A stretch of DNA of 64,000 bases from Mytilus edulis (taxonomy: Eukaryota): the NCBI RefSeq assembly GCF_963676685.1, contig NC_092347.1:73222001-73286000 (forward strand), given 5' to 3'. Below, piece by piece: positions 684 through 63,448 of the stretch; position 1 is the stretch's first letter; each line of letters starts with the position of its first letter. Made by a program: the position numbers and the translations under genes. Under the pieces are notes generated by a model. It was not told where the DNA came from, did not search any database, and saw only the letters and a list, made by a program, of their open reading frames with translations.

Positions 684-3600
684 ATGATGTTTGATACGAA
701 AATGTCTGCATGCTTTATAACGCATTCTCTTTGCACGATAGGTATGTCTTTAGATTTTCTGCAAAATGCTTAAAAGGTTAAATATCGTTATTTAAAATAT
801 AAAATATAAAATATCTTTAGCCACATTTTTTAAAAATTTCTGATAACACAATCACTAGGTACACGAACTTTTAAAAAGCATTTTGAAATTGTCAACGTTT
901 AAATTAAAGGGCTTGTAGTTTACTCTGCGGGTGAATTTAAATATAACCCTTTAACGTAATGTTTTTCAGCGAATTTTTTATTGAAGATTACAAACATGAT
1001 TGGTTACTAACGTGAATTATATTTCTATTTAACAGCAATTCTTACATCGCTGTTTTCGAGGGTAAAGACAACACCAACAGGCGCCGAGCGATGGCGACAT
1101 CCTTGTGGAATATCCAATACTGACACCAGCCATTTTCCACCCGTACCTACACGACCACTTGTTGAGATTATTACTGGTATGCTAGTATTGATAAAAGAGG
1201 GACAAGAATATTCAAGCAACCTTCAAGAGAAATTTGTAAGTATTTCCTTATAATTTTGCTTAAAACAGTGCTAAATTTCATTTACAAAAGGCGCAGAAAC
1301 ATGTATGCATGTACATGTAAAAGTACTTTTTGACTATCAACTATTATAAATATAGATAACCTTTTTGGGCTTTTTTTTTATATTAAGTCAGTGGGTTGTT
1401 GTATAATGCAGCAAATATTGTAGATGGAAAGTGAAGTGAAACTACTAGTATCGCGCATTTTTGCTAGAAAATCATTCTTACCGTTAATATTTTAAATTAT
1501 TTAAATCCATGTTTAAGGAAATTCATAAGCTATCTTATTCATTTTATCAGTAAAAGAATGTTTAAAAATTCATTCATAAATTTAACTACACGGTCGGTGA
1601 TTTTTCTTTTTAGTTATAGTAAACAATACGAGAAAAATATGTCACTATAATTCTCAGAATACGGAAGTAAAAATTAAGGTGTAAGAAACGTGATCTAATG
1701 ACATATATATCTGGATTTAAAATACAATTCATAACCCGGTTATCGCACTACAACAGCGGACTTGTTTTACGTTATATGAAATTATTTTGTCAAAATATTT
1801 GAAAAAAAAGCGTTAACTAAATTAATTGTCAAATATGAGTACTGAAAAAAGAGAAATAAATTGGTGTTTTGAGTGTTTAATTCTACATATCTATATTAAT
1901 ATATCTCCTTATTTTTAAGTGTCATAATTATAAATCGATATTATCTTGTTTAAATATGTACAGTATGTATTAATACTTGATAAAAGATAAAATTATTAAC
2001 TATTCAATTAACGGATGTAGTTTTTGTGAATAAACAAAAGTGTTACAATCATTTCCATTGGTCAGTTGAATCTTCCCACTTGTGTTCAATATCATCCTCT
2101 TTGATTTTTAGGCCATGGAGCGAGTGCAAAGTATGCGACATGTGGCATTTCTGAATAGCCTTCATCATGATGGATTTCCAAATGTTAAAACTGCGACGGA
2201 AGGGGATATACAAAATTCCGTAATCAATGTAAGTTTACATTATTATTGAAAAGTATATTCTAATAACAATGTTTATCTTTAAAAATGAATTAAGGAATAT
2301 TATTATCTTTAAAAACGCCAAATTGAATCTTTTCGTTTCAATTTTATGTTGTTGATAAGTGTTGGCAATGTTTGAATAAATATATACAGCACGTTATTGT
2401 TATCGAAGGGGAAGTTACCAAGGGTCAAATTCCAAAAATGACAATAGAAAATGGGAAATCCTGCAAAATATGCTTAACTTTGAAAAAAATCAAATTTCCC
2501 AGTATACTATGATCATGATTATGCTCTATGTACTAAACATAAAGTACATATACAATACCTAAACATATATACAATACAAACGAATTTTTCTATCGATTCA
2601 TTACCCTAAAAAAAAATAATACAATATCAAAACGTTCACATTACAAGTGTATATTCAAATCTTCATGCGTACCTTTATGACGAATGCAACTTTAAAACCA
2701 AGAATTCTATGCTCTTTAGAGCTATCGTCGATACTTCGATTTTAATCATTCTTTACAAAATTGAGAGACATGTAGAAAACAAGATGGTTGGTTGATAAAT
2801 AAGTCTCCTACAAGTTGCTTCCAGCTATGCATTATATTATTACTCTATATATAGGTAATTATTCTCTATGCTTCATATTTTTAAAGTACCTTGTTATTCT
2901 ACAAGTTGCTACCAGCTATGCATTATATTATTACTCTATATATAGGTAATTATTCTCTATGCTTCATATTTTTAAAGTACCTTGTTATTCTACAAGTTGC
3001 TACCAGCTATGCATTATATTATTACTCTATATATAGGTAATTATTCTCTATGCTTTATATTTTTAAAGTACCTTGTTATTCTACAAGTTGCTACCAGCTA
3101 TGCATTATATTATTACTCTATATATAGGTAATTATTCTCTATGCTTCATATTTTTAAAGTACCCTGTTATTCTTTATTCTCTAATTTTTTAGTTCATTTT
3201 CCTCTATTCTTTTTTTTAATCCATAATTATCTATTCTTTAAAACCCTATCCACAAACTCTTTACTAACACAATTTCTACGTTGTATGTATTTATAATTTG
3301 TTTTTGATATGTAAACAATCTTACAATGACAGAATGATTACTAATGTATTTTTTTATTATTATTTCAGGTACCGAAAACTCATTTAGACAGCTACAGAAC
3401 TTTAGCAATTGCTTTGGTCTTCATCGAAAAGATGAAGTTTGACGAAGATATATACGAAAACAAAAAATATTCCAATGAAATTCTTATTATGGAATCGAAA
3501 CTTTACGACATCCTCTGTCATATGGATGAAGTTATAAGCACAAATGGAGACAGCATTGAACACGTGACACGTGAAGTTATGAGCAGGGAACTGCGCGCGC

Positions 3601-3719
3601 ATTCGGAAAGAACAACCCGTTTCGCTCGAGATTACATAACAGTGAAAGATACTTCTAAAATCATGGACTATTTAATTGTTCAATACTCAGCTTTAAAAAA
3701 TCATATCCAAGAAAGCTAA
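684..3719 (+). CDS. Gene 1: secreted helical cytokine-like protein (Unpaired/IL-6-like candidate), 4 exons, 241 aa
   Basis: Exons 684-741, 1036-1235, 2112-2228 and 3369-3719 are all GT-AG bounded (phases 1,0,0) and join into one 726-nt ORF: MMFDTKMSACFITHSLCTIAILTSLFSRVKT/TPTGAERWRHPCGISNTDTSHFPPVPTRPLVEIITGMLVLIKEGQEYSSNLQEKFAMERVQSMRHVAFLNSLHHDGFPNVKTATEGDIQNSVINVPKTHLDSYRTLAIALVFIEKMKFDEDIYENKKYSNEILIMESKLYDILCHMDEVISTNGDSIEHVTREVMSRELRAHSERTTRFARDYITVKDTSKIMDYLIVQYSALKNHIQES*. It has a hydrophobic signal peptide, an alternative in-frame ATG at 702 and four amphipathic segments. The gene model is well supported; the family call is inferred. Confidence 0.88.
2808..3171. repeat. Intronic minisatellite, 4 x 91 bp
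   Basis: Near-identical units CTACAAGTTGCT...CTTGTTATT start at 2808, 2899, 2990 and 3081, inside gene 1 intron 3. Confidence 0.95.
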
Positions 3720-4149
3720 GAAAATCAACAGCTTATTCAATCTTGAGGTAAATCAAGAGGAACTCGAGTAGATTATATTAATCAACTGTAAGTGGTGTCC
3801 ACTATATTGTGTTGTGATATTTACGTATGTGCTTTGGAATTATAGTTCGCCTTTTATGCTGACGCTATAAGAAGTTTCATATATATATACAACATTCTAA
3901 GTAGAATTTCCGTTTAAACGACGATGACAATCCGATGTTTTCATTTGAGAGAATGAGATATAGTTGAGATGAACGAATTTCCAAAGTATAATACATAATC
4001 TATAATTTACTCTTTACATGAAAGTTTAATGGGTTCTGTGATAATTGTATATCTGTGACTGTGATACATGTTAAATTCTGGGCATTAGGTTTTGAAATTT
4101 ACATCATTTTTTTATATTGTATTGTTTTAATATTGTTTTATCGTTAGTC

Positions 4150-18339: not shown

Positions 18340-19878
18340 TTAAAATAGAATTATGTAATCTTCATTCTAATGAAACTGATAGAAAACAACGTTAACACAT
18401 GCATTTAAAAACTTGCATGTGTCGTCTGCGCATGCGCGTTCATTTACACAGCTTCAATTGTGATGCCATGAAAATTACTGACGTTACTCAATTAAAATGA
18501 ACGGTATCACCAATGTTGCATTAGAATATTAAATTGTTATCATCTTATGTCTTAGATTTTTGAACGGTAGCTTAAATTTCCAAGAAATGTCATAACGAGT
18601 TCATATGACTTGTAATTTTCTAATTGCGTGTGTATTGAAAAATTATCCATGTATAATAGAAGTTTTTAAGTACATGTTGTTTTTCATTTTCTGTCGTAGT
18701 TTCCGCGTTCATTTGTTTACACGTTTTATTTCCCTTTAAATAATTTTCTAATCAGGAAGAGTGTCGAAGACATTTATCAAACACTAGTAAATATAATAAA
18801 TACTGAATTTAGTTTTCTAACTAAAACAAATCTTATTTTGATAAAAACATCTTTTGTCAAAATCTAATATCCCCAATGTGTTTCTTCTTCTATAGCAATT
18901 TTTGATTGTGTGGTTTTAATGGAAAGTAACTGTATTTACTAACGTCTTCGAAGATGGCGACCACAAGTTTTTTTCTCATTTTAAAAAAATAACAAAGGAG
19001 TGCTTTCTAAGAAATACACAATGAGTCTGTCTAATTGTTTACTTAAAATTTAGTCTATCTTAATCAGGTTCATTCCTCCTATTCCCACTTTTTAAAAATC
19101 TGGTAAGAAAAGTTAAAATTTTATGTGGGAATTTGGGCAAACAAAGGATTATACTGAATAAACATTGTTAAATCAACTTTTAATTGACCATTGCTTTTTT
19201 ATAGGTAAAACATTATTTTTGTAAACGTATATGAATTTTGTGTTTATAATCTGAATAAATATGAAAGAAATGGAAACAAATATAGTAAAAATAATCATTT
19301 CTTGTATGAAACAAATTCAACAGTAGAGTCAAGAAAGCATTATAATACAAAACAAAAAGTTAACAACACTAAAACAAATCACATATTGTAACACATACAT
19401 TATAAATTTATTTTATATTAGTCTAACAAAGTGTATTAATATATTCAACGTGAATAAGGTGGGAACCATCATCACCAAACTGTACAAATCTAAAACAAAC
19501 TGACAACGCCATGGCTGTACTGTTGTGATTTCCTGGTTGAGGTATCTATTCATAAGCTCAATTTACGTTATTGTTTGACCAAATGAAATCGGTTGTTATT
19601 AAACAATACAAATGCACGATATAACCTCTATAATTAAAATGATTAAATTGTAGTTTAATTTAAACAACGTTATCAACAAAGGCGTGTTTATATATAAAAT
19701 AATTATTGCTTATCTTGTCTGTGCGAAAAATTAATATTGTTGCCATATCATACCAAATTCTTTGTTGATTATATTTAACTTTGAAAAAACAAATAGAGCC
19801 GAATTTATACATTTCAAATATACTTTTATGGTCCGAGAAAAGATTTTGATCCACACATGAGACATATTTAAAACGAAA

Positions 19879-20985
19879 GCAAACATTGGTTGATCACCCG
19901 TGAGACATGTTTAATAAATGAAAACAGTTTTGATCTTTGATTAAATATACAATAGAAAAACAACAAATTACAATTTTTGTTTGTATTCTAAGAGAAGGCA
20001 ATTCGTAATCAAACCTTGTTTTCGGCAAAACTGAACAGGCAAATGACGTTTACAAAACTGTTAATTATCATAAAATAATGACAAGAGCAATCCTTAGCAA
20101 TTTCAAGCTATTTTTTTTAGTCCGACTTTCGCATTGGAATCTGAACATGAGACAGCAAACATTGGTTGATCACTCGTGAGGCATGTTTATTAAATGAAAA
20201 CAGTTTTGATCTTTGATTAAATATACAATAGAAAAACAACAAATTACAATTTTTGTTTGTATTCTAAGAGAAGGCAATTCGTAATCAAACCTTGTTTTCG
20301 GCAAAACTGAACAGGCAAATGACGTTTACAAAACTGTTAATTATCATAAAATAATGACAAGAGCAATCCTCAGCAATTTCAAGCTATTTTTCTTTGTCCA
20401 ACTATCGCATTGGAATCTGAACATGAGACAGCAAACATTGGTTGATCACTCGTGAGTGATGTTTATTAAATGAAAACAGTTTTGATCTTTAATTAAATAT
20501 ACAATAGAAAAACAACAAATTACAATTTTTGTTTGTATTCTAAGAGAAGGCAATTCGTAATCAAACCTTGTTTTCGGCAAAACTGAACAGGCAAATGACG
20601 TTTACAAAACTGTTAATTATCATAAAATAATGACAAGAGCAATCCTTAGCAATTTCAAGCTATTTTTCTTTGTCCGACTTTCGCATTGGAATCTGAACAT
20701 GAGACAGCAAACATTGGTTGATCACTCGTGAGTGATGTTTATTAAATGAAAACAGTTTTGATCTTTGATTAAATATACAATAAAAAACAACAAATTACAA
20801 TTTTTGTTTGTATTCTAAGAGAAGGCAATTCGTAATCAAACCTTGTTTTATGCCAAACTGATTAGGCAAATGACGTTTACAAAACTGTTAATTATCATAA
20901 GAGAATAACTAGTAACTAGAGCAATCCGTAGTAATTTCAAGCTATATGTCTAGTTATTCTAATCCGACTTTCGCATTTTGATCTG
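19879..20985. repeat. Tandem satellite, about 4 x 276 bp
   Basis: GCAAACATTGGTTGATCAC recurs at 19879, 20155, 20431 and 20707 with high identity. Confidence 0.95.
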
Positions 20986-29477: not shown

Positions 29478-31088
29478 AAAAAAGAAGATGTGGTATTATT
29501 GCCAATGAGACAACTATCCACAAACGACAAAAAGGACACAGACATTAACACCTATAGGTCACCGTACGGCCTTCAACAATGAGCAAAGCCCATACCGCAT
29601 AGTGAGCTATAATAGGCCCCGATAAGACAAGGTAAAACAATTCAAACAATAAAACTAACGGCCTTATTTATGTAAAAAAAAATGAACGAAAAACAAATAT
29701 GTAACACATAAACAAACGACAACCACTGAATTACAGGCTCCTGACTTGGGACAGGCACATACATAAATAATGTGGCGGGGTTAAACATGTTAGCGGGATC
29801 CCCCCCCCCCCCTAACCTTGGACAGTGGTATAACAGTACAACTATAAAAATCAGTTTAAAAAGGCTTAACTCATCAGATGGACAAAAATACAAGTGGACG
29901 TGGCCGGGTACTTATACACCCCGACACAAAGAGACGCAATGCACAGATCTGAGAGTGCTCGCAGTTATCTGACAGCTAGTTCAAAGCCACTAACAACTAA
30001 TAAAAAAAATCATGCATCTAAGACTAAACTATCAATCCCTACACATCCAATATCCAATGGATTTAGTGTAAAGACGTCATAAACAGCCAGAGAAAAACAT
30101 GACCTTGTGCAATGCCAAGTTACAGGTAACGACAGATTGTAGATCCATGAATATATATATATATATGTATATAACATACTAGAAGTATTTAGTTAGCTTT
30201 TAATTTACTGATGACAAATCAATATTTATACCAATAAAAACAATATTCAATGATCTTATTACAGTGTTGAATAGGTAATCTTTTAGGTGAGTTTATTTAA
30301 AGGAGCGACAAGTTTACATGGATCATTTTGAAATTTCCGTAAAAATGAGGATGTGCTATCCCGTTTGAAATAAGTTTTCTACAGGTACAACCAAACTTCA
30401 AAACCAAATTTTTATATCTATGGAAAACTTTAGTTAAGGTTTTAAGTAATTTATGGTAACGATATCCCTGGTTTAATGATTTACCAGTAATTCATCGGTT
30501 GCGTTCGTTAAAATCAAAAACGTCACAACAGACACGGGCATAGCGAACGAGCTGTGAATATAAACACCGTAGGATGGTGCCAAAGGAACATCACCATCTA
30601 AAAATGGATAATTAACAATAGGGAACGAAAAATATTTTGTCGTAAATTTTAGTGTGGAGTTTCCCGTTTAAAACCGAAAGATCTAAATCCAGGAAAGGAC
30701 AGTTATTACCGAATAAATTTGATTTATTTAATGTAAGTTCCTTGGGGTAAATTTCAGTAGTATATTGAGAAAATTCTTGATTATTTAACGAAAACATATC
30801 ATCAAGGTAACGGTAAGTGATGTTGAATTTATCAATTAAATGCAATTTCGACGGGTCTTTACTGAGTTTAGTCATAAACTGTGATTCGTAACAGTACAAA
30901 AACAAGTCTGCTATTAAAGGGGCACAATAAGGTGCCCATTGGGATACCTACAAACTGTCGATAAACTTTGTTGCCGAAACGTACATAAATATTATCAAGG
31001 AGAAAATTAACAGCTTCAATCATCTCATCACACCTCCAGTAAGTATATCTAGCATGTTTACCTTTCTCATTTGAGAAGAAGGCTTTAA
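29478..31088 (-). mobile_element. Penelope-like retroelement, 3' part (degenerate RT + 3' UTR)
   Basis: Minus-strand translation has NIYVRFGNKVYRQFVGIPMG, TYRYLDD and FLDLDLSVLNGKLHTKIYDK with frameshifts. It continues into repeat family A. Confidence 0.9.
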
Positions 31089-35204: not shown

Positions 35205-36805
35205 ATACTCAATCTATAAGTCAGCATTATACATATGTATACCTTATCAGATTTAGGTCTGTAAGCATACACAAGTACCCGTCAAAATAAGATCAAGTCA
35301 GCATTATACATAATTATTTATACCATATTAAGGTCTCTAGGCACACACAAAAAAATGTCAGAATAAGAACAAGTCAGCAGTACATGTATACCATATAAGA
35401 TTAAGGTATATAGGCTCACAAAAAATGTCAGAATAAGAACAAGTCAGCAGTAAACATATGTATACCATATCAGATTAAGGTCTATAAGCATACAAAAAAC
35501 CGTCAGAATAAGTACAAGTGAGCATTATACATATGTATACCATATCAGATTAAGGTCTGTTAGCATACAAATACTTGTCCGAATGAGTACAAGACAGCAT
35601 TATACTGATGTATACCGTATAAGATAAAGGTCTGTAAGCGTACAAAAAACCGTCAGAATAAGTATAAGTGAGAATTATACATATGATACACTATCAGATT
35701 AAGGTCTGTAAGCATACAAAAATATCCGTCAGAATAAGTACAAGTCAGTATTATACATATGTATAAATTATCAGATTAAGGTCTGAAAGCATACAAAAAT
35801 ACCCGTCAAAATAAGTACAAGTCAGCATTATACATATGTATACCATATCAGATTAAAGTCTCTAGGCATACAAAAATACCCGTCAAAATAAGTACAAGTG
35901 AGCATTATACATATGTATACCATATCAGATTAAAGTCTCTAGGCATATGAAAATACCCGCCAGAATAAGTATAAGTGAGAATTATACATATGTATATCAT
36001 ATCAGATTAAAGTCTGTAGGCATACTAAAAGAACCGACAGAATAAGAACAAGTCAGCATTTTACATATGTATACCAAATCAGATAAAGGCATGTAAGCAT
36101 ACAAAAAACCGTCAGAATAAGTACAAGTCAGCATTTTACATAGTATGAAATTCAAAACAGTGTAGCTATGGCCATTGATTGACACATTAAAATCATTCAT
36201 TGACTGGGACAATTTAGGTGAACGTTTGTATGTAACGACCAATGCTCACTATGTACTTTTTAAAGAAACTTAAACTATGGGGTCACCAAAGGTTCTCAAA
36301 ACCTAAATAAAGTAATTCGAAAAATTAATCAGAAATAACACGATATTTTGATTTATATCAATTATATAAATCAAAACACAAAGTTTATTCCTGATTAATT
36401 TTTCGAATTATTTTATAATTAAAGGCGTTAAGAAACCTTTGGTGACCCCACAGTTTAAATGTCTATCGTAGGTACGTCATGAACAGTGGTTGTTACAGAC
36501 AAACGTTCACGTAAATTGTCCCAGTCAATGGATGATTTTGATGGGTCAATCAATGGCCACAGCTACACTGTTTTGAATTTCATACTATGTATACCATATC
36601 AGATTAAGGTCTGTAAGCGTACAAAAAAACCCGTCAGAATAAGTACAAGTCAGCATTATACATATGTATACCATACCAGATTAAGGCATGTAAGCATACA
36701 AAAAACCGTCAGAATAAGTACAAGTCAGCACTATACATATGTATACCATATCAGATTAAGGTCTGTAGGCATTCCAAAAAAAAAACGTCAGAATATTAAG
36801 TACAA
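35205..36805. repeat. Satellite of about 75-77 bp units (about 15 copies), interrupted by a fold-back MITE
   Basis: Unit AGAATAAGTACAAGTCAGCATTATACATATGTATACCATATCAGATTAAGGTCTGTAAGCATACAAAAAACCGTC. Confidence 0.92.
36143..36585. mobile_element. 443-bp fold-back MITE with TA target duplication
   Basis: Almost fully palindromic (GTATGAAATTCAAAACAGTGTAGCT...AGCTACACTGTTTTGAATTTCATAC). Removing it and one TA restores the satellite sequence TTTTACATATGTATACC. Confidence 0.88.
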
Positions 36806-37714
36806 TTTTTCAAGAAAATTTCTAAGTTCTTAAATATTCAAAATAAAATCAAACTGACATAATTTTTTTGTTTGTCCAGAGTTTCTTAGTAAATCTATAA
36901 AGGGAACAATCCGGGGTGAATGTTTAATGCTCTTTTTTCATACAAAAAAACATAAAATAACAAAAAACACCAAAATTCAAAACAAAAGTATGAAATAAAA
37001 TGGCAAATTCAAAAGCTTAAAAACATCAAAAGGATGGATACCAACTGTCATATTCCTGACTTGTAACAGACATTTTCTTATGCAGAAAATGGTGGATAAA
37101 ACCTGGTTTTATAGCTAGCTTATCCTGTCCGTTTTTTCAAGATATTGTTTTGTGCTGTGTACATTAGGTCAACAATATATTTGTCATGGATGCTACTGTC
37201 TAGTGTGATGATTAAATGCACGTTAATGAGCAAATACTTCAACATTGGCATGATACATTTTTTTATTCTGATTAAGTATATTATGAATCACTTGTAGTAA
37301 ATTGTGAATGTATGTTTGAGGTTTTTTTTCTTTTTCAATAATATATCTAATGTATTTGAACGGCAATCTGTTAAATAAACAGTGACTTTTTCTTCTAAAC
37401 CTGGCATTGCTCTTCCCTATTAACTTACATAAGACGAACTGTATTTTATGAACAAGTAATAATTCCATGATTTTGTGTATCAAGTAAATTTATTTTCATT
37501 TGCTACGATTTTTTATACGCTGCATTCTTCAAGCATACACTTATTTGTTTATGCATCTTCACGTTAGTAATATCCTTTAACTTTACCATGTTTACGTTCC
37601 GCTATATATATAATATATATATATACGAAACCTCTTTCTAAATTATTTTAAAACATCTATGTTTTCAGCAATCAAAGCCCTGCTCAAAAGTTAATGTGAA
37701 ACTGTCAATTCTAG

Positions 37715-39149: not shown

Positions 39150-42100
39150 GTCCAATTGCTCTGAAAATTTGATGAAAAAATCCTGTTAAAAAAAAGACGT
39201 TTATACTAAGGAAACGGTCAAACGTACGAATACAATTGTGGGGATTTTAAAGGGATAATGAAATTAACGTAATTTAAAGGAAACCATCTAATGACCGAAT
39301 ATAAAAACGTTTTTATGTAGGTGGGTTCTTGCAGCCGTTTTCTTAAAATTTACGTTAGAAATCCAGCATTCTGGTGCGTGTTTTGCGTTGATAAACCCCT
39401 AAATTTTCATGTCTAGAATGTAGAATTGTGTATAAATACTGTTCCATAAAGCTTCACATGTATTAATTGTATCAGTCAGTCGATATAATAGTTCTAGCAA
39501 TGAAGCCAGTAAGTGTCGTTTATCTGTTCATCCTTATTAATTCATTTTTTTTCTTTCTTATTATTATGTATAGATCTGAAAATGAACCAAAACAGACAAT
39601 TTTTTTTTTTTATCAATATTATTTCATTCAATTTATCTGGCACCCAACATCAATGTTTCCTTATGAAAATTAAATATTCTAAATCTATGAAAAAGATTAA
39701 GTAGTAACCAAAATGTGTGACAGTAGCAACCTAAGTATGTCTTTTCCTTGATATCGTCGCATACTATATTTATAATATTAAGGAAAAATGTATGCATCGT
39801 TAACAAATTCTCAGTTTTAATACTTACAAAGGCAGTGTAATTGTTTGATAATAAAGGTCGTCGTCGTCTTAAGGGAAGCAACCATTCAGCCTTTCGACAA
39901 GTATTACTATGAGAAAAAAATAACATGAACTCCGCTAATGAAGGAATAATAACATGTTTTCCTCCCCTTATTTCATTGACAAATTCAGTATTTAAAATTC
40001 TTCGACCTACGATAATATAAACTATAGTCTCTAAATGAAAATATCATGTTGAAAAAGAAGACGCTTTTCTCTAGAAACGGTAACATTCGCGAACACAATT
40101 TTGAGGATTTTCAGAGGCAAATGAAATTAAACCAAATATAAATGCGTTTTTATGAAGGCACGTTCTTGAAAAAGTTACAAAATTTACATGAGAATTTCAG
40201 CATACTAGTGTGTTTTTCGTTGATAATCCATAAGTTTTCATGTTCAAAATGTAGAAATTGTATAAAAACTGTTACATAAAGCTTCACATGAATCAATTGT
40301 ATCAGTTAGTCAATAGAATATTTCTACCAATGAAGCCAGTTAGTGTCGTTATATGTTTTATTTCATATTGATAAGCATTCCTATGAGGAATAACCAACAT
40401 TTATTCCTCCCCTTATTGCATATATAATATACAATTACAGTCTCTAAATGAAAATATCACGATGAAAAAGAAGACGTTTTTTTGCGGAAACTGTAACATT
40501 CGCGAACACAATTTTGGAGATTTCAAGAGGCAAATGAAATTATCAAGATGTTAAACATTGACTAACCAAATATAAACGCGTTATATTGTAGCCACGTTAT
40601 TGAAAGAGTTGATACATTTTTCTCAAAATTTACATGAGAACATCGGCATACTAGTGTGTGTTTTGCATTGATAATTCCCAAAATATAGAATTTGTATAAA
40701 TACTGTTCCATAAAGTTTACACGAATCAATTGTATCAGTCAGCCGATAGAATATTTTTAACAATAAAGCCAGTGAGTGTCGTTTACGTGTGTGTTTTTCA
40801 TATCAATTCATTTTGAACTTTTTGTTAATATCATGTTCGGATCATAACCTGAACTAAATATCATTTGATTAAATTTATTTGGCACCCTACATCCATATTC
40901 CCTTATGACAAATAGATATTTAAAATCCATGAAAGACGATTAAATACTAACTTCAACATGCCACAGTAGCAACCAAAGTGTGTCTTTTTCTACAATACGT
41001 TTCATATAATATTTACACTATTAAGGAAGAAAGGTATACATCGCTAATAAATTGTAGCATACAAGAAGCGAGGTCAGTGCAATTGATCAGTCTGTCAACA
41101 AAAAGATTGGATAAGATGCTGGTCTATTTTCTAAAATCCAATCACCTAATTACTTTATGCTTGTGGATTTTATTAAAAGGTTTAATTGTCCGTTATCTCT
41201 GTTAAACTGATATTAAGTTAAATCAAAACCAAAAGTTGCAATTATCAAATATATAGAACCATACTATTACGGTACACTCGGAAGGGGCGTAACACGAAAT
41301 TCCTTATTTACATTTAGGGGTTTTATACTCATGTTTAATATCTACAAAGGCAGTGTGATTATTTGATAAAATTGTTCGTCTTGAAGGAATCAACAATTCA
41401 GCCTTTTGACAAGTATTCCTATGAGGGAAAACAACATGTACCCCTCCCCTTATTGCAGTGACCAATCCAGATTTTTTTTATTCATCGACCTACGATACAC
41501 TTATAAACTCGAAAGAATTTAAAACATATTATTTTTTCCGCTTGGTCTTAGATGCACATAAACCTTATAACTAACCAAAAGTGGACAAGAAACTTTATCA
41601 AACATATGTTTGGTTAGGTATGAAATAACACAACATTGATAATAATTATATGTGGAGGTGAACTACTTCGGACATTTCCTAATAATAAGTGGGAATAGTA
41701 TCTGTGACATCCGCCGCCCATGCAAATTTAACAAATGTTAAGCATATTTTGTGAGATAACACTTATAGTCCTGAATGAAAATATCGTGTTGAACAAAAGT
41801 AGACATTTTACGCAGAAAACGGTAAAACTTACGAAAACAATTTTGGGGATTTTGACAGGCAAATGAAATTAGCGTCAAGTATAACAACTACTGTCCAAAT
41901 ATTAGAGCGCTTTTATGTAGGCGCATGCTTGAAGGAGTTACCCTTTTCTTAAAATTTACATTAAAATTCCAGCATACTGGTGTTTGTTTTGCGTTAATAA
42001 TCCTTAAATTTCCGTGTCCAGACTTTTGTATAAATACTGTTCCATAAAGCTTCACATGAATAAATTGTTTCACTCAGCCGATAGACTATTTCTAGCAATG

Positions 42101-42670
42101 AAGCCAGTAAGTGTCGTTCATGTTTAGCCATAGTAATTTATTATATTTTTTCTAAATATTATCGTCGGATCAGAATATGAACTTAACCATACAAAATGTT
42201 CTTTTTTATAAATATTTTTGACTCAACTTATCTGGCACCCTACATTCATATTTCCTTATGAAAATTTGATATTTTAAATCCATGATTAACGATGAAGTAG
42301 TTACGATAATTTTAGACAGTAGCAACCAAAGTATGTCTTTTCCTTTGTTTCGTTGCATACATGTACTATATTTACAATATTAAGGAAGAAAGGTATATGC
42401 ATCGATAATACATTGTAGTATACAAATAATTTGCTTGATGCCACATTTTAAAAACTATCTATGTGTTAGTCTTAAAATGTATTTTCCTTTTATGGAATAC
42501 AATAAGCATGTCAGTATAATTGACCAGTTTGTCTTAAGAAAATTGGATAAGATAGTGGTCTATCTCCAAAATCCAATCATTTAATTACTTTAGTTATGCA
42601 TGTTGCTTTACTTTAAAGGTTAAAGTGTTCTCTCTGTTTAACTGATATTAAGTTAAATTAAAACACAAGT
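39150..42670 (+). promoter_or_regulatory. Array of four diverged copies of the gene 2 promoter/exon-1 cassette
   Basis: TATAAA(T/A)A at 39431, 40261, 40695 and 42029. Each is followed 68-69 nt later by ATG AAG CCA|GT(A/T/G)AGT at 39500, 40330, 40763 (ATG mutated to ATA) and 42098. Flanking sequence is also repeated. Confidence 0.75.
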
Positions 42671-45600
42671 CTTTTCCCAATGTTCAAATTGTACGATATC
42701 AGAACGGATCAAGCCCGAGTGGGTCTACTAATTGTATTGTTTCTTGTTCCATTGAAGGTTATTAACATCCGTATATGTGGAAGGATCGAGTGACGTTTAT
42801 TCATAGTCATTTATTTCGATCATTTTAACGATTGCCCTTTTTTTTATATTTAAATTAATTGTTAAATTGCACTCACTTTATCATATAAACCTTATATTTT
42901 TCAGACTCTCCTTATCTCGATTTTATGTCTTGGATATTTTGTACGGACATCGTATGCACTGCCTATTTTATGCAGTAACGAATCACCGGGAAACATCTTG
43001 AGATTACGTATACTTGACAGAATACATTCCAATGCACTGAGTTTAGCAGAATCTTTAAAACTAAAAACAGTAAGTAAAAATCATGGTATTTATCATAAAT
43101 GGCATTCAAAATGCTAAACATAGTGCATAGTAACAAATCATGTATGTGTTAAAGTATTCAAGACGTATGAAAGTTAAAAAAACAAATCGACAAAAGGGAG
43201 CAAATATTACACAAATTGATTATTAACCTATCAATTGAGTTGCTATTTATCGCCTCTCTTTCGCTATGTCAGTCTATTTGTACTAATTACGGAAACTACT
43301 GCTGAGCAAAAAAAGGTGGAAAATAATATTGTGCTTATTGTACCTGAATTTGCATTGGTTCAAACACCTCATTAGCAAGAAACATGATTAAGATTTAAAC
43401 AACCACTTTATTTATCAAATCTATTTTACCCTTCCCCTAAAACAAACTATAAAATGAAACACATGTTAATTTTCATGTTTTGTAATTTAATAAACCAAAT
43501 AAAAGCTTTTACCATACATCTTTTTTTAAGTGTCAGAATCAAGGTACTGCGAAAGTTTATAACATTTGGGTATATTCTAATCAACTGAGTCTTATGATTT
43601 GAGAATTCAAAATGTATTCCGTAGTGAAAAATGGTAAACATCAATTTTAATTGTCTTTTTTGGGGGAAAATGTCAATCTTAAGCTGGAGTTAGAAAGTGC
43701 AGTAATTGTTTTGTACTAACAGTAATATCAACATGTGAAGATTTTAAAAACACTGCGATCTTATTTAGTAATTACCGGATTTGTTTTCACATAAGCAACA
43801 CGACGGGTGCCACATGTGGAGCAGGATCTGCTTACCCTTCCGGAGCACCTGAGATCACCCCTAGTTTTTGGTGGGGTTCGTGTTTTTTATTCTTTAGTTT
43901 TCTATGTTGTGTCATCTGACTATTGTTTGTCTGTTTTTATTTTTAGCCATGGCGTTGCCAGTTTATTTCCGATTGATGAGTTTGACTGTCCCTTTGGTAT
44001 CTTTCGTCCCTCTTTTAGTATATAAAAGTACGATCTCTGTTTAATTTTTATTTAAATTTTAATTTTTAATTCAATACAATTGTTATCAAAAATATCTTTC
44101 AGAGTTCACATGTCTCAGACTTGCTTAAACAACTTTTAGACCATGCAGCTCCTCCATCTGGATTCCCTAGCATATCATCTAATGCAAGCTGCTCTGACTG
44201 TAATCAGGTATGTTATCAATTATAAGAATCATTTGCAGCATTTAGCATTCAATACAAGAGGTTACATGTATTCTTTAAAAGAAAATATATTTTGGTATAT
44301 AACCTTATTTCTGACACACGAGAGAGCAAATGCGATGACAGATAATCTTTTTTTCTGACACAAAAGAGTGCAAATACGATGACGGCTATTGATAAACCTA
44401 TTTATTACACATGAGAGTGCTAATGAGTGATGACGGTTGTTGATAAAGTAAAGATGACACATGTTTTTATCATTTGATTGACGTTGCATGATTAGTGAGT
44501 GGCAAGGGAACAATGTTATATACAATCAAGACGCCATCAAGGAAGCAAAAACAATAGATAGGTTATGCGATGTAGGTCGACTAGGATGAGAGGAGTCAAA
44601 TGTATTTCTGTCATGGATAAATAAAGATAGAAAGATAGAAATAGAAAAATGTGGTGTGAGTGCCAATGAGACAAATCTCCATATAAATAACAATTTATAA
44701 AAGTAAACCATTATAAATCAATTGACGGCCTTCAACAAGGAGCCTTGGCTCACACCGAACAACAAGCTATAAAGGGCCCCAAAATTACTAGTTTGAAACC
44801 ATTCAAACGGGAAAACCAACTGTCTATAAAAAAACGAGAAACAAGAAACACTTATAAATTACATAAACAAACGACAACTACTGTACATCAAATTCATGAC
44901 TTAGGACAGGTGCAAACATTTGCAGCCTGATTAAACGTTTTAATGGTACCAAACCTTCTCCCCTTTTCTGAAACAGTAGTATAACATCACAACATAGAAA
45001 AACACACGATAAAATAGCAATTGGAAGGCTTAACTCAAACAAAAGAACTGTTTTGTGCATATTGGATTTAACTCAATTGTCATTTAAGTGGTTGGCAAGG
45101 CACACACATATCTTTTTTAAATCTTCGTCTTTCCGGTTGAAAGCATCTGTTTCAAATTGCCATTTTTTTTTATTTGTCAACTGTTGTTTTTTGGGTAAAT
45201 TTGTTACTAGTAGTGTCTATTGGCCATGTACATTAAACCTACCCGCGTTTTAAATTTCCAGTTCACGAATCATTTGAATGAAACATGAATAAACAAAGTC
45301 ATGTGATTGTTAATGAAAAACCACCCCTTCTTACAAACAGTTTCTTACTTCAATCAAGCAATCAACAAAGAAATTGTTAAAAAATGTTAACTCATACATA
45401 TCACTGTTCTGAAGTCATTTCTGTCTCTTTCTCTGAACGAATTATACTACTAGTAGGTTTTTTAAAGCCATCTTTTAGTTGTTTCCTACATAAAATAAAA
45501 CTTTGTTCTTTTAAAAACATTCGAGTACATTAAGGGCATGAACACGATATTTACATATGAATTAGATTAACACATATATAAACTAATTTTTCATACTTAA

Positions 45601-46028
45601 CGTAACATATCTTAAAAACTGCATTTTGATTATGTGGAAATAGTATGCAAACCATATAATAAAGTAAAATAAATGTTTTATACTTAGGGCGACTATATTC
45701 TATTCATTCAATTCAAAATTGATTATTATTGCAGACAAGCTGTTTTGAAGAGGACCTTGCACCAATTGAAAATTTGATGAGGTTCATAAACAGTTATATG
45801 TCTTCAAGTTATTCTACAGAAATTGTGAGCATTACATCCGAGTTATCTGTGATCCGCGAACTTATGGGTGGAGATGCAATAGATATGTCAAATATATTTC
45901 AATTAAAGAGTTTAACCCAGAACACGGATACAGATTACATTGCTGCAAAGGATACAGATTACATTATTGCAAAAGATACTCTCAATTTTATCAATAAACT
46001 TAAACAACGCTACGAAACACGTGTTTAA
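42098..46028 (+). CDS. Gene 2: secreted helical cytokine-like paralog, 4 exons, 190 aa
   Basis: Exons 42098-42106 (MKP|gtaagt), 42905-43069, 44103-44207 and 45735-46028, all phase 0 and GT-AG: MKPTLLISILCLGYFVRTSYA/LPILCSNESPGNILRLRILDRIHSNALSLAESLKLKTSSHVSDLLKQLLDHAAPPSGFPSISSNASCSDCNQTSCFEEDLAPIENLMRFINSYMSSSYSTEIVSITSELSVIRELMGGDAIDMSNIFQLKSLTQNTDTDYIAAKDTDYIIAKDTLNFINKLKQRYETRV*. Exons 2-3 are clearly homologous to gene 3, and the GFP and DYIxxKDT motifs are shared with gene 1. Confidence 0.85.
43770..44015 (+). mobile_element. Repeat family B (PLE 3' end) in gene 2 intron 2
   Basis: Near-identical to 56240-56492, the 3' UTR of the PLE at 55538. Further copies are at about 6670-6905, 14845-14980, 17835-18010, 27065-27260 (all minus) and 54195-54388. 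Confidence 0.85.
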
Positions 46029-55537: not shown

Positions 55538-56492
55538 TTGATTGATAACATATTTGTTACGTTCGGAGGACGTGTTTTTCAACAAACTGTCGGCATTCCA
55601 ATGGGAACAAACTGTGCCCCTCTACTCGCCGACTTGTTTCTTTATTTTTATGAGGCTGACTTCATGCAGGAACTTCTTAGGAAGAAAGATAAGAATTTAG
55701 CAATATCCTTTAACTATACTTTCCGCTATATAGATTATGTTCTTTCACTAAACAATTCAAAATTTGGTGACTATGGCATCTATCCAATCGAACTAGAGAT
55801 AAAGGAAACTACAGACACAGTTAAGTCGGCTTCATATCTTGACTTACATCTAGAAATTGACAATGAGGGTCGGTCGAAAACAAAACTTTACGACAAAAGA
55901 GATGATTTCAGCTTTCCAATTGTGAACTTTCCATATCTAAGTAGCAACATTCCAGCAGCAGCTGCATACGGGGTATATATCTCCCAATTGATACGATATT
56001 CCCGTGCTTGCATTTCCTATCATGATTTTCTTGATAGAGGTTTGCTGCTCACAAGGAAGCTATTAAATCAAGAGTTCCAAATGGTGAAGTTGAAATCATC
56101 CCTTCGCAAATTTTACGGACGCCATCACGAGTTGGTTGACCGTTATGGAATAACCGTTTCACAAATGATATCGGATATGTTCCTTACGTCGTAACTGCAA
56201 TCCCCTTCCCTTTCATGAATATGAACTACCGAATTAGACTATTTACCGGATTTGTAATCACATAAGCAACACGACGGGTGCCACATGTGGAGCAGGATCT
56301 GCTTACCCTTCCGGAGCACCTGAGATCACCCCTAGTTTTTGGTGGGGTTCGTGTTGTTAATTCTTTAGTTTTCTATGTTGTGTCGTGTGTACTATTGTTT
56401 TTCTGTTTGTCTTTTTCATTTTTAGCCATGGCGTTGTCAGTTTATTTTGGATTTATGAGTTTGACTGTCCCTTTGGTATCTTTCGTCCCTCT
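55538..56492 (+). mobile_element. 5'-truncated Penelope-like retroelement (probable Naiad clade): RT/thumb ORF 55538-56194 plus 3' UTR
   Basis: GIPMGTNCAPLLADLFL, FRYIDY (YIDD mutated), YLDLHL, LYDKRDDFSFPIVNFP and YGVYISQLIRY. The ORF stops after the thumb with no C-terminal GIY-YIG domain. Confidence 0.92.
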
Positions 56493-57959
56493 TTTGCAAA
56501 TGATGTAGGGTTATATATTTGATTTCCAGTTTCGTTGTGTAAGTTAGTCAACCAATAAAAAACATAAGATTCGGTAAAACAAATTTTCTCAGCATGCAGT
56601 TGACAATGACACATCTTATTGTTTAAAATTCTGACAAAATCTTTCATTCAAGTAAACTTTTAAGATTCACATCACTAGAAAATACAATTGCGTATGATGA
56701 GCGAAAGTATGAATGATTTGTGTATTTCTGTCATTGGTTCATTTTTTACATGCGCAAGCTTTTTTAAACAATTTCCGCAAGTAGCGATTATAAACTTATG
56801 ATCAACTCTGCTTCCTTCTCTACGATGTAATTACATTACTAATATACAAGTTCCCTCTTCTTATGTATTGTTGGATGAAAAGTAATAAAGTGACCAAAGT
56901 GAATAATGAAATGCAGTGTGATTTTCTCAGATCTTTAAGATGATACGTTGATCTTGTTTTGTGTAATTCCAATATACCCACTATTAAAGTATTTTCGTTG
57001 GCTTAGTGATTTACGTCTGTTGGTATCGAATTTGTCCCTTTGGCTAATATTGGAAAGTATCTCCTCCCCCCATCCCTCTAAAGGAACGAAACTCCCACAA
57101 ATTCAAAAGAAGAAAGAGGTGAAAAATACTCAAATACTCAAATGCATGAAACAGTAGTCTGCAAATTTTGAAACTTTTGTTTTTCATTTTTTTATTAGCT
57201 GTCAGTACCCATGGATATTCATTTAACGTCACTCTCTGATGAGTCTAGCGCTTTCAAATTATACATTGAAGATTTAAAAGACCGAAGAAATACTGTTTGA
57301 AATGCAATCGAACACAGGGAAAAACATTTGAGATATGACAAAACAAAACAAACCGCCGGCATTTATAATATTAACAAATTTATTTTCTGGTAACGGAAGA
57401 AAAAAAAGTTTAGGAATTAGATTGAACAAGCAGCACGATCCCATACTTATGCTTAACCATAACTTGAATATAGCTTCTCTTGTATTCGGAAGTTAAAATA
57501 GTTCAAAACTGGTACCGATGATGAATCGGCCACTATGGAAAACAAGAGAAAAACATTTATAAAAAAAACTTAAACAGGAATATATTGTAGCATATTGTCT
57601 AATGTAAAACGATACGGTCATGACCCCTCCCTCTCACCCCTTTTTGTCATCTTATCAGATCCATTATCTGCATGAGTAATACGATATCTTTTTTAAACAT
57701 AAATACAAACAAACAATCAGAGATATATAAATGCTTTAAAAGTATAATATTTTAAAAACGCATACATATATATGTGTGTGTACCAACGTGAGTACCGCTA
57801 GATACTTTATTTGTATGTATAAAATCAGAGTATGCAAATGTATTGCTTGTTTAATCGTAAGTAAATTGCATTTGCAGATATATATGTCTCTTCCAATTTC
57901 CAACACGAATTGCATGGTCAAAAAATTATTTTTAAATGAAACCAAACATGGTTTAATTA

Positions 57960-58982: not shown

Positions 58983-58987
58983 TATAA

Positions 58988-60281
58988 CGTGACGGTACCC
59001 AAATTGCACCTTTTTTGACAGTTTTTTCACCTACGTTTTTTATGATAAAGAAAAAAATGTCCATACTGTATTTATTTTGTAGCCCTATCCTTCTTTTTTG
59101 TATAGGTACACCAATTTGATTTTTAATCCATATTGAGTCATAAAAAATGGGTTTGAATCAACCTCCAAACTATCCATAATTTTGTAATGAGGAGTACCCA
59201 AATTGCATCCATGCTTAAATTCACATCGTCAAAAGTCTAATAACCGAGCTTTTGTGTAATTTCTTCAAATATTTGAACAATTGGATATTAGTAAAATTGA
59301 GAATGGAAATGGGGAATGTGCCAAAGAGACAACAACCCGACCATAGAAAAAAACAACAGCAGAAGGTCACCAACAGGTCTTCAATGTAGCGAATAATTCC
59401 CGCACCCGGAGGCGTCCTTCAGCTGGCCCCTAAACAAATATATACTAGTTCAGTGATAATGAACGCCATACTAATTTCCAAATTGACACAAGAAACTAAA
59501 ATTAAAATAATACAAGACAAACAAAGGCCAGAGGCTCCTGACTTGGGACAGGCGCAAAAATGCGGCGGGGTTAAACATGTTTGTGAGATCTCAACCCTCC
59601 CCATATACCTCTAGCCAATGTAGAAAGGTAAACGCATAACAATACGCACATTAAAATTCAGTTCAAGAGAAGTCCGAGTCTGATGTCAGAAGATGTAACC
59701 AAAGAAAATAAACAAAAATTACAATAATACATAAATAACAACAGACTACTAGCAGTTAACTGACATGCCAGCTCCAGACTTCAATTAAACTGACTGAAAG
59801 ATTATGATTTCATCATATGAACATCAGGCACAATCCTTCCCGTTAGGGGTTTAGTATCATACCATCATAACATATATGAGAAGAACATAACCCGTGTCAT
59901 GCCAACAACTGGTTTTTGAATAAATGTGTGTAGTTCCGATGCTTACTCTTCATATTTTATGCTTACTCTTAATATTTTACGAAATGGATACTTATAATAT
60001 ATTATATTTGCTAGTTTTAAAAAGATGACGTTTTGATGACGTCGCATGGTGACGTTTTCGTACATTTTCTTTTTTCAGTAAACAGTCCATCTGTTGATAA
60101 ATACTGTGAACGTTTTGTGCATATCTAAATATGTCTACCTATGTTGAAAGACGTGCATAGTATCAAATCATAAAAATATAAATTGTTTAGTGTCTAGGAG
60201 AATTCATAAGTAAGATTTCCGTTGATATTTTTTCTAAATAGGTACAATTTGGGTACTTGGTGCAATTTGGGTACCCTTACG
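58988..60281. mobile_element. TIR element with nested family C repeat (59293-59940)
   Basis: CGTGACGGTACCCAAATTGCACC versus GGTGCAATTTGGGTACCCTTACG, with internal repeats of GTACCCAAATTG. Confidence 0.7.
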
Positions 60282-60294
60282 ATATATACCAAAT

Positions 60295-60770
60295 CGCGAT
60301 GATTTTAATTTTCCCATAGTCAACTTTCCATTTCTGTGTAGCAACATCCCAGCGGCGCCATCATATGGAGTATATGTGTGTCAATTGATACGTTACTTTA
60401 GAGCTAGCTCAAAGAACATTGATTTTGTTGAATGAGGAATACTGCTTTCTCAAAAGTTGCTAAGACAGGGCTATGAATCAATCAAATTAAGGTCATCACT
60501 CAAGAAATTTTACGGTCCCCATCATGAGCTGATTGTCCATTATGACAAAACTGTGTCAGAAATCATATCTGATATTCTTCCTCAGTCATAATAACCTTCC
60601 ATCATTACCGAACTGAATAAAAAAAATAACACGACGGGTGCCGTATACGGTGCAGGAAATACTTACCCTTCCGGAGCACCTGATTTCACTCCCGGTTTTT
60701 AGTGGAGTTCGTGTTGTTTCTTCTTTATTATTCATAACTGTTGGTGTAAATGTCCTTTGGTTTTGTGAGT
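60295..60770 (+). mobile_element. Penelope-like element 3' fragment (thumb + 3' UTR)
   Basis: RDDFNFPIVNFPFLCSNIPAAPSYGVYVCQLIRY...KKFYGPHHEL...SDILPQS*, with one internal stop. Confidence 0.88.
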
Positions 60771-60903
60771 CTGTAATATTTTTTGTCTATTCGAAATAGC
60801 ATAAAAAATGTGGTGCACACTTTAAAAAAAACCGCCACGCGAGTTATTCAGTGTGAACCACATTTTTTATGTCATTTCTTCATAGACAGAAAAAATATTA
60901 CAG
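60771..60903. repeat. Palindromic MITE-like element
   Basis: CTGTAATATTTTTTGTCTAT...CATAAAAAATGTGGT is mirrored by ACCACATTTTTTATG...ATAGACAGAAAAAATATTACAG. Confidence 0.7.
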
Positions 60904-61164
60904 TCACTCCTTCAATAATTATGACAATAAGAAAATGAAATCTGTAGCGAAAACAGCAAAAGAATATGGTATAAATGATAGTTTATTTTCAATGATTGTG
61001 TAATAACAGGATGAAGCAGGCCCTTTTAAAACATTTTTGCAGATTCATTGTACTACTTTTTGTGAATGAAATAACAACACAAAACTTTCAAATTCATCAG
61101 GTCATCTAACTGAAACTTTTCCTTCCCTAAATACATGTCCAAATACCACCACGTTCTTGTTTTG

Positions 61165-61210
61165 GTGAAGATATTCCCAACGGAATTTTCCAAACTCTAT
61201 ATAAATTTAA
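61165..61210 (+). promoter_or_regulatory. Putative gene 3 promoter: kB site(s) + TATA box
   Basis: GGAATTTTCC at 61182-61191 and GATATTCCC at 61170-61178 lie immediately before TATATAAA (61198-61205), about 70 nt upstream of the ATG. This is the same TATA-ATG spacing as in gene 2. Confidence 0.6.
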
Positions 61211-61270
61211 GTCCAGGATTCACTATTTAATAACTATTTAATATCATTTCAAGCACCAATCATTTATACT

Positions 61271-63448
61271 ATGGACTCCGTAAGTTTTATTTTACACATG
61301 TCTAGATGGATATTTTCATCGAACAAAATATAGTCCTCACTATGTACGATTCGGTTGAATTCCAAATTACAGTTTCTTGCGGGATCAGTTTTGTTCACAA
61401 AGCAAATTATTAACAATAATTTTCAAAATTAATTGAGTATATGTCTTAAGGAAGAACCACGAAAGGCTGAAGCACACAATTATGTTTAATTTGTACTGAC
61501 AGATGTTCATATAACAAATAGATCTCTTTCCTAAAATTCAACATTTTTCTTTTTCCTGTTAGTTCATAAATATAAAGCTAAAATTAAAACTTAGTGAACT
61601 TATTGTACAATGGAGGAAGTTTAGGGTGATTAAGGTCGAATGACCTTTTATGAATGAAACAAAGATGATGTTACACGAGGAAGAAACGCAGCAAAGCAAG
61701 TACCGAAACACTACTGAATATCTTGAGAATTTACATTCCTCAAGTCTTCTATGAAATAGTTATAATTACATTACGTTACAAAACTTTTTGCATTCATTAG
61801 AATAAATCTAACACAAATTTCCTTATTTAAATCACTACATTTACTAATGCTGTGATTACTATACTACCTATGGTTAATTCTTAGTTAAAGTGTGTTTTTA
61901 TTTGAACTTCTTTGTTTCGTACTTTATTATTTTTGATGGAATTGGAAGTTTTACATTCATGGAATGTTTTAGAGGGAACGTAATAATTCGGTAAACAAAT
62001 AGTATATTTATAAACTCCAAATTGATGTTCTATGTGAATTTATGTAGCAAGTGGGTTGATATAATCAGTTTATCCTTTTCGTTTGTTATACGATGTGTCA
62101 GTAGCCCACAATGTAGTTCATTTCCGTCAATTTACAGTTTTGAATGGTTTAACCTTATTTAACAATATATAATGATTGAGATATCAAATCCATTCAATTT
62201 CTTTGATACATTGTTTAGTAAAATTAAGTTCTTACAGTTTATAGCATGAAGCTCTATGTACCATTAATATACAGGTTAAACTTACGGATCAATATAATAT
62301 ATCATTGTCATCCCTACCAATATCAGTTCTACTGTTTTTACATTAAATTGCAAACTTTTATTGCATTATCATAGTATCATATACACACTATTTTCATGTT
62401 TTACGAATAACAATGTTAAAATTATGAACGAAGCTTTCCGATTTCTGGGGAAATGTGTTATAAACGTTTATAATTTTCTGACATTGCATTTTTCTTTCAA
62501 ACGGCATTTAAATATTACTACAAATTACTACAATTATGATTATCAAAATGTTTACTCAACAATAAAACCATTAAAGAATCCTTTTTTTTTTTTTTTTAAT
62601 GACGTTACCTGGAATTGACATTGCGTGAAATACCCTTTTGTTATACTTGCTAGATAAAGACAGCAGGAAATGTTCTAACTTAATTAAACATGTTAAACAA
62701 ATCGTGATCCCCTGTAGGATTAGGTTCAAAACTCACGAGACTGCAACCATTATTATATATTAATTTTTAAATGTAAACATATATTTATCATTTTATTTTT
62801 CAGTCATTACAAATCGTCTCCTTTTTATGTGTTATGTATCTTGCATTGCCATCATTTGCAATGCCCATTACCTGCGATCCAGAAAACTACACGCGATTAC
62901 AGATTAAGGACAGAATACATACTCGTCTTATGCCATCAGCTGAGGCCTTAAAAAGCAACATAGTACGTAAATACTGAATATATTTAGTTAATTATTCAAA
63001 TTGATTTCAATTAATTCTTGAATGACTTTTAGAGTCACAGTTTAGAAAGCAAAGATACGTCTAATGGAAAGAAAATAAAACAATATTAAATTTTTCTAAT
63101 ATCAAATGTATGAATTGTCCCATTTGTATAATAAATTGTTTTTTTTTTTTAAATATTAACATCTTCTGGCACTTGCTAACTATCGAACACGGTCTTGGTT
63201 GCTGATTTAGTTTGTAACCTGGAATTGTCTTCTCTTAATTTTGATATGACCTTCGAACAGTGGTATACTACCAATGATTTTATTTAGTTTATTTACTCGT
63301 TCGTCACTTATTTTACGTAACATAACTATCATTTATGTTTATTTAGGTTTCCAAATTTCCACTCTGGGTTTTACCATATTTAGACGCTGCAGCATTACCA
63401 GGATTTCCAAACATATCATCTAATGGAAAATGTTCACTTTGTACACAG
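61271..63448 (+). CDS. Gene 3 (3'-partial): secreted helical cytokine-like paralog of gene 2; exons 1-3, last exon beyond the window
   Basis: Exons 61271-61279 (MDS|gtaagt), 62804-62962 and 63347-63448, phase 0: MDSSLQIVSFLCVMYLALPSFA/MPITCDPENYTRLQIKDRIHTRLMPSAEALKSNIVSKFPLWVLPYLDAAALPGFPNISSNGKCSLCTQ. It aligns with gene 2 (PIxC, RLxIxDRIH, AExLK, LDxAA, GFPxISSN, CSxCxQ). Confidence 0.85.

Follow-up and report, generated by a model that had tools for sequence, protein, structure and literature searches.

The 64-kb stretch of the 1.37-Gb Mytilus edulis genome analysed here, hereafter the window (C4:73222001-73286000), carries three co-oriented spliced genes on the + strand, g1, g2 and g3, which are part of an expanded tandem cluster encoding small, putatively secreted proteins, and for which models of related proteins predict the long-chain class I helical cytokine fold of the IL-6/gp130 group. 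An initial annotation made from the sequence had proposed three such genes as candidate cytokines; open frames and canonical AG/GT borders in all three, checked by script, bear out the gene models, and the exon plan recurs in paralogues. Its remark that the open reading frame (ORF) track barely shows these genes was apt, the list displaying just the last exons of g1 and g2, and further details also hold: first exons are tiny (58 nucleotides (nt) in g1; 9 nt in both g2 and g3), introns are in phase 0 throughout g2 and g3 (0, 0, 0) and at two of three positions in g1 (1, 0, 0), the two complete genes encode 241 (g1) and 190 (g2) residues, and six-frame translation of the window places GFP[NS][VI] at exactly three sites, 2172, 44160 and 63401, all on the + strand and one in exon 3 of each gene. 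A second motif that it named, DYIxxKDT, is likewise present (3630, 45933 and 45957 in the same translation), but lies at the start of the last helix and not, as had been claimed, at the end of the protein.

The type-A gene g1 (684-3719) is preceded by a TATA-like box recognised by its motif (TATATAT, 602-608), 76 nt before the ATG at 684. Exon 1 (684-741) comprises the ATG and the first 19 codons of the putative signal peptide, ends at the donor GTATGT, and is the same in the annotated M. edulis proteins P0002 and P0054; exon 2 (1036-1235) encodes the remaining signal peptide, a W-x-x-P-C-G segment and helix A (model residues 61-91). Exon 3 (2112-2228) completes helix A and continues through the AB loop, where DGFPNV lies; it has phase-0 introns on both sides, and its junction with exon 4 is matched in the M. 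trossulus XP model P0001 and in the transcript-like P0052. Exon 4 (3369-3719), delimited from the ORF list, exon model and alignment, encodes helices B, C and D and the stop, with RDYITVKD opening helix D.

Both remaining genes are type B. In g2 (42098-46028), the exon model assigns Met-Lys-Pro alone to exon 1 (42098-42106); the signal peptide, first mature cysteine and helix A lie in exon 2 (42905-43069), which aligns with helix A (residues 49-79) of the paralogue P0025 and has paralogous exons at six other loci. Exon 3 (44103-44207; 105 nt, phase 0 on either side) encodes the AB loop with GFPSI and a C-x2-C pair, and exon 4 (45735-46028; exon model) helices B, C and D and the stop, with an internal duplication considered below. 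For g3 (61271-63448 in the window; ~177 residues in full), exon 1 (61271-61279) encodes Met-Asp-Ser with TATATAA at 61198, exon 2 (62804-62962) the signal peptide and helix A, as placed by exon model and paralogue alignment, and exon 3 (63347-63448; exon model) the AB loop with GFPNI; its exon 4 begins 35 nt past the window end, at C4:73286035-73286298 (window-equivalent 64035-64298; L005:1495-1758). TATA-like boxes lie 60-80 nt upstream of the ATG in g1, g2 and g3, and poly(A) signals follow both stop codons within the window (g1 and g2). The N-termini of all three proteins are hydrophobic and are followed by small-residue cleavage contexts, as in secreted proteins with putative signal peptides; in the predicted models, the N-terminal helices (residues 4-24 and 6-26) stand apart from the bundle.

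Constraint and genomic organisation of the family

The g1 model is identical at 240 of 241 residues to M. edulis CAG2248678.1 and at 236 of 241 to CAG2257740.1, and unnamed 241-residue g1 proteins are annotated in M. edulis, M. galloprovincialis and M. coruscus; the description of these genes as hidden therefore fails for g1, already annotated if unnamed, and stands for g2 and g3, which may be unannotated in databases. The last exon of g2 is represented there only by prokaryote-style ORF calls (P0008). A type-A homologue of 243 residues (P0052) lies on a Logan contig of 1323 nt, too short for a 3-kb genomic gene, so that the contig probably represents a transcript spliced at all three type-A junctions. 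For type B, M. edulis (XP_071169165/6) and M. trossulus have RefSeq models of the gene at 73.411 Mb, those of M. edulis following the exon plan seen here, and proteins for it are annotated in M. galloprovincialis and M. coruscus. Ratios of non-synonymous to synonymous substitution (dN/dS) of 0.30, 0.26 and 0.25 in three recent paralogue pairs indicate purifying selection on the family. Chance ORFs were rejected as an explanation because of these dN/dS values of 0.25-0.30 and the conservation between species, and the sequence comparisons support g1-g3 as real, constrained genes for small, putatively secreted proteins.

Family loci were counted by exon-wise searches of the genome, which identify at least 16, with at least 6 lying outside a cluster of 10 genes, all on the + strand, that spans ~280 kb of C4 and encloses the window; the g1-g3 locus is thus part of an expanded tandem cluster, as had been anticipated. 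Type-A last exons in the cluster lie at C4 73.137, 73.184, 73.193 and 73.225 Mb, with more divergent type-A copies on C14 (two) and at C4 77.44-77.47 Mb (three); type-B copies lie at C4 73.267, 73.286, 73.300, 73.346, 73.395 and 73.411 Mb, with one more on C12. Exon sizes, borders and phases are common to the paralogues, type-B exon 3 measuring 102-108 nt everywhere, and W-x-x-P-C-[GA] is conserved among the type-A paralogues on C4 and C14. The type-B copy at 73.395 Mb (L023, C4:73391500-73395200) carries a frameshift within its last exon, and its exon 3 was not detected; it is probably a pseudogene inside the cluster. The family is also represented on contigs from metagenome deposits (JGI/IMG, ENA, and the whole-genome shotgun prefix JYMV01; clusters P0020, P0004 and P0019), some up to 282 kb long, whose presumable source is DNA of the host mussel in samples of symbionts or the environment.

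No cross-matches between types A and B were found by BLAST-like search. Profile-profile comparison with hhalign aligns their last exons with E 3.2e-5 (probability 73%); the full-length alignment (E 8.7e-5, probability 60%) runs collinearly through 134 columns and matches GFP with GFP and DYxxxKD with DYxxxKD. The sub-types agree, too, in where two phase-0 introns interrupt the structure, one at the end of helix A and the other where helix B begins, so that exon 3 encodes the AB loop and exon 4 helices B-D. On the strength of the profile match, shared intron positions and genomic adjacency, types A and B are regarded as one family.

Sequence searches and predicted structure

Searches of Pfam with all exon peptides and seven full-length relatives returned sub-threshold noise only at E≤10; the match to a Pfam IL-6 family profile that the initial annotation had led us to look for did not appear, neither IL6 (Pfam accession: PF00489) nor LIF_OSM, CNTF, IL11 or GCSF matching the exon pieces or full-length relatives at that threshold. 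Sequence profile searches of the PDB (A1 and A2) returned noise and nothing relevant, a Pfam IL6 scan of the mussel genome itself gave one weak, unrelated match on C11 (E 0.75), and the IL-6/G-CSF/MGF cysteine signature was not matched by regular expression in g1-g3 or the seven relatives. By these criteria, the family falls outside every curated family, and would be new at the level of sequence, within a protein kind that is already known but had no described representative in the phylum.

Structures were predicted with AlphaFold2 for two proxies: type A was represented by P0002, 98% identical to g1, and type B by P0025, the paralogue at 73.411 Mb. Short type-A paralogue exon fragments (A4 and A5), whose tails were misplaced by MAFFT, were left out, and alignment A6 was used. 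The P0002 model has a predicted local distance difference test score (pLDDT) of 72 and a predicted template modelling score (pTM) of 0.71, and the P0025 model a pLDDT of 80 and a pTM of 0.70. Both consist of a signal helix followed by four long helices (type A: A 61-91, B 126-154, C 160-183, D 206-240; type B: A 49-79, B 110-134, C 137-156, D 174-196), with a long AB loop bearing a mini-helix, a short BC turn and a long CD loop; the predicted connectivity of both is up-up-down-down with long AB and CD crossover loops.

Comparison of the type-A model with 48,161 PDB representatives (VIA-align Z-scores) placed IL-11 first, with Z 19.0 and a root-mean-square deviation of 2.1 Å over 164 of 165 residues in sequential superposition, followed within the same group by CLCF1 (17.8), OSM (16.6), IL-6 (16.4), CNTF (16.3), IL-27p28 (16.3) and LIF (16.1); matches of hormone type included placental lactogen (15.8), growth hormone (GH; 13.0), leptin (11.8) and erythropoietin (EPO; 10.7). 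Helical cytokines take every one of the first 24 rows and the highest-ranked non-cytokine scores Z 8.4; Foldseek gives a template modelling score (TM) of 0.84 to IL-11, with long-chain cytokines filling the top 50. The type-B model matches IL-23p19 (12.6), LIF (11.9), IL-12p35 (11.8), IL-11 (11.6) and IL-6 (11.6); cytokines hold its rows 1-32, the best protein of another kind reaches Z 6.9, and its top Foldseek matches are G-CSF, IL-11, LIF, IL-27 and IL-6. Helical models often reach Z ~13-14 by chance arrangement, according to the tool's own warning, a level that type A well exceeds and below which type B falls, though its match list is equally specific.

An independent check agrees with this: in the ESM Atlas, the language-model features of P0002 and P0025 lie beside IL6, IL11, LIF, IL12A, GCSF and Hormone_1 clusters (scores 0.90-0.96). 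The Atlas single-sequence model of P0002 (pTM 0.78) matches a 114-member mollusc cluster at TM 0.78; at second hand, 11% of this nearest cluster carry Pfam IL6 (PF00489). A generic up-down four-helix bundle was rejected because ferritin/Dps-like matches reach only Z≤8.4. Class II cytokines also rank lower, type A scoring 9.9-11.5 against interferons and 7-9 against IL-22, IL-20 and IFN-lambda, compared with 16-19 for the IL-6 family, and type B follows the same order, with IL-6-family matches over class II cytokines. The structural check proposed with the initial annotation, prediction followed by fold search, thus yielded for both proxies a long-chain bundle matching IL-6, IL-11 and LIF, and the models strongly support a fold that is specifically that of a long-chain class I helical cytokine of the IL-6/gp130 group.

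Candidate cytokine ligands and competing explanations

In their mature length of ~160-215 residues, their putative secretion and their predicted four-helix up-up-down-down topology with long AB and CD loops and an AB mini-helix (Z 16-19 for type A; 11-12.6 for type B), the family proteins are like the vertebrate IL-6/gp130 cytokines (IL-11, CLCF1, OSM, IL-6, CNTF, LIF and IL-27p28); they differ from these in lacking detectable sequence similarity, in their cysteine patterns, and in being products of protostome genes in a large tandem expansion. The tiny first coding exon resembles what we take to be the arrangement of the LIF and OSM genes, and the type-A N-terminal and helix-C cysteines are, on our understanding of those proteins, reminiscent of LIF/OSM disulfides. 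D-Y-x3-K-D is the most conserved motif of both sub-types and lies at the first turns of helix D, an aromatic and lysine motif in the place where, we assume, LIF-type cytokines have FxxK; the spacing here is Y-x3-K, not F-x2-K. The start of helix D presumably provides the site III contacts of the IL-6 family (Trp in IL-6/IL-11, FxxK in LIF/CNTF), and the surface motif D-Y-x-x-x-K-D is proposed by analogy, as a lead, to be a candidate receptor-binding determinant.

Two further systems invite comparison. The Drosophila Unpaired proteins (Upd1-3) are, by description, alike in being protostome secreted proteins, thought to be helical cytokines, from tandem genes, and are, we assume, roughly twice as long as the mussel proteins. 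They are ligands of a gp130-like receptor (Domeless) that activates JAK/STAT (PMC13203501). The nearest described mollusc analogue is oyster CgIFNLP, a secreted bivalve helical cytokine by modelled structure, class II (interferon)-like and reported to act on JAK/STAT-related genes (PMC9756803). As with the mussel proteins, its assignment to the helical cytokines comes from a model and not from sequence; it is set apart, by description, in that the mussel proteins match the class I IL-6 type over interferons.

We consider it reasonably probable, from the predicted models, that g1-g3 belong to a Mytilus family of secreted IL-6/IL-11/LIF/CNTF-type four-helix ligands acting via class I receptors and JAK/STAT. 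Released from the cell, such proteins would act as intercellular ligands, bridging class I cytokine receptors (IL6R/gp130/Domeless-like, as reported in molluscs), whereupon receptor-bound JAK would phosphorylate STAT; divergent paralogues and alternative first exons could supply diversified or differently regulated signals. The cytokine interpretation of the initial annotation is accordingly supported in part, the predicted fold and the locus organisation found by genome searches speaking for it, while its receptor and pathway level we infer.

Several observations weigh against this assignment. With no Pfam cytokine family or PDB chain matched at sequence level, homology with the vertebrate cytokines has to be argued solely from predicted structure, and a common fold is no proof of common function. 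The alignments used in folding have little depth, with 15-23 rows of which many are fragments, pLDDT ranges from 41 to 72 among the five type-A models, and the evidence on the type-B fold comes from the paralogue P0025 only, whose identity to g2 and g3, taken per exon, is 34-43%. An exon-level genome scan for the receptor domain IL6Ra-bind (Pfam accession: PF09240) was blank, its controls being blank too. A full-length database protein for g2 or g3 was not found by a word-based search, which can miss entries, and g2 is without two cysteines that all other type-B copies keep (the CFNxDC and QMGC positions).

These last points bear on whether g2 and/or g3 might be decaying or unexpressed, with only other cluster members functional. 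Such decay would account for the missing database proteins and the lost cysteine pair, and might be read into an in-frame 24-nt tandem duplication in g2 exon 4 (45930-45977; 21 of 24 bases identical), which doubles DYIxAKDT at the start of helix D, as well as into the frameshifted neighbouring copy L023. However, neither g2 nor g3 has lost its open frame, canonical splice sites or TATA box, and the duplication, being in frame, recurs in independent Logan contigs (Logan ORF P0008). The joint absence of both g2 cysteines suggests that the two pair with each other, the CFNxDC and QMGC cysteines probably forming one disulfide in type B, and their loss together fits the loss of that disulfide rather than decay, which we judge quite improbable. 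A lineage-specific secreted helical protein without signalling function (effector, carrier or matrix), its cytokine fold convergent or an artefact of shallow alignment, would be in keeping with the absence of sequence similarity to known families, with sequence searches that show the family only in Mytilus and mussel-like contigs, and with moderate model confidence. This too appears distinctly unlikely, since the connectivity is the same whether predicted by AlphaFold2 from an alignment or by the ESM Atlas from one sequence, and in each of two independent sub-families, and the IL-11 match is far above unrelated helical bundles; to our knowledge, moreover, secreted proteins of long-chain cytokine topology are essentially all receptor ligands.

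Among receptor ligands, the family could instead represent helical endocrine or neuro-hormones of the GH/prolactin/leptin/EPO kind, governing growth, metabolism or reproduction and still acting via class I cytokine receptors. Prolactin, placental lactogen, GH, leptin and EPO are indeed among the type-A matches (Z 10.7-15.8), such hormones take ranks 2-3 in Foldseek, and the top ESM feature match of P0002 is a Hormone_1-bearing cluster; yet scores against the gp130 family lie consistently over those of GH, leptin and EPO, and a fast-diverging tandem expansion of at least 16 loci would be more typical of immune ligands, leaving a hormonal role unlikely. The type-B scores raise a different prospect, that of proteins like the IL-12-family alpha subunits (p19/p35/p28), working only as heterodimers with a soluble receptor-like partner: the best type-B matches include IL-23p19 and IL-12p35, and the ESM features of P0025 place IL-12 alpha clusters second and third. 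The gap in Z to LIF, IL-11 and IL-6 is, however, less than 1, in effect a tie; the mature proteins have even cysteine counts and hence no obvious free cysteine for an intersubunit bond, and no p40/EBI3-like gene was seen in the window, so that an obligate heterodimer seems highly improbable.

Extending the assignment to IL-6-type ligands, the family may represent lophotrochozoan ligands of a gp130/Domeless-type receptor-JAK-STAT axis, with IL-6-type cytokines dating from the protostome-deuterostome ancestor and diversified in mussels into a network of 16 or more genes, which would form two sub-families and have alternative promoters and first exons; we advance this tentatively, as having a little less than an even chance. 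If true, it would imply that an animal with innate immunity only has a cytokine system comparable in complexity to that of vertebrates. The resilience of mussels to disease is well known, as are their expanded and variable families of immune genes, and the genes described here would be relevant to mussel immunity. According to a 2026 survey, IL-6-type ligands are reported only in vertebrates and Upd only in insects, and Mollusca possess an IL6R-like receptor together with JAK and STAT, while no IL-6-type ligand is known from them (PMC13203501), in agreement with what the initial annotation had stated of molluscs. The bivalve cytokines covered in reviews are IL-17, TNF, MIF, AIF-1 and an interferon-like protein, with no class I helical cytokine (PMC9756803), and no prior description of class I helical cytokines or Domeless ligands from molluscs, lophotrochozoans or Mytilus was found in the searchable literature. 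The genes described here would be the first concrete, clonable candidates for the missing mollusc JAK/STAT ligands, making the question of what activates JAK/STAT in bivalves directly testable, and the locus bears on when the IL-6-type fold arose.

First-exon copies and repeats in the window

Upstream of g2, a unit of ~100 nt comprising the g2 TATA box, 9-nt exon 1 and splice donor is present in four tandem copies between 39422 and 42121 (repeat family D1). The distal copy (39422-39523) retains ATGAAGCCA followed by GTAAGT intact, as an exact 19-mer at 39496, and is identical over this run to the copy at 42094 in the proximal g2 unit (42020-42121), which has TATAAAT at 42029. Of the two between them, the second (40326; unit 40252-40353) retains the ATG with a weaker donor, GTTAGT, and the third (40759; unit 40685-40786) has ATA in place of ATG and is thus probably dead; all four are on the + strand. 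From their sequence, the repeated units may be alternative promoters or first exons of g2. In the 73.411 Mb paralogue, the first exon is the sole difference between RefSeq isoforms X2 and X3 (P0023 and P0025).

Other repeats are found within and between the genes. Intron 3 of g1 contains a 91-nt tandem repeat (2808-3173; 4.0 copies, 98% matches), and two satellite-like arrays lie between g1 and g2, one of a 276-nt unit (19878-20945; 3.8 copies) and one of a 75-77-nt unit (35218-36781; ~12 and 2.6 copies), the latter accommodating the long listed ORFs at 35997-36833. Intergenic ORFs resembling retroelements gave no Pfam match at E≤0.01; two of them, at 55538-56194 (+) and 30612-31218 (-), carry '...GIPMGT..APLLADLFLY' and look by eye like remnants of a retroelement polymerase. 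A short ORF starting MPHVEQDLLTLPEHLRSPLVFGGVRV recurs at 43807-44025 (in g2 intron 2), 56278-56508 and ~60630-60720, and looks like the end of a dispersed repeat.

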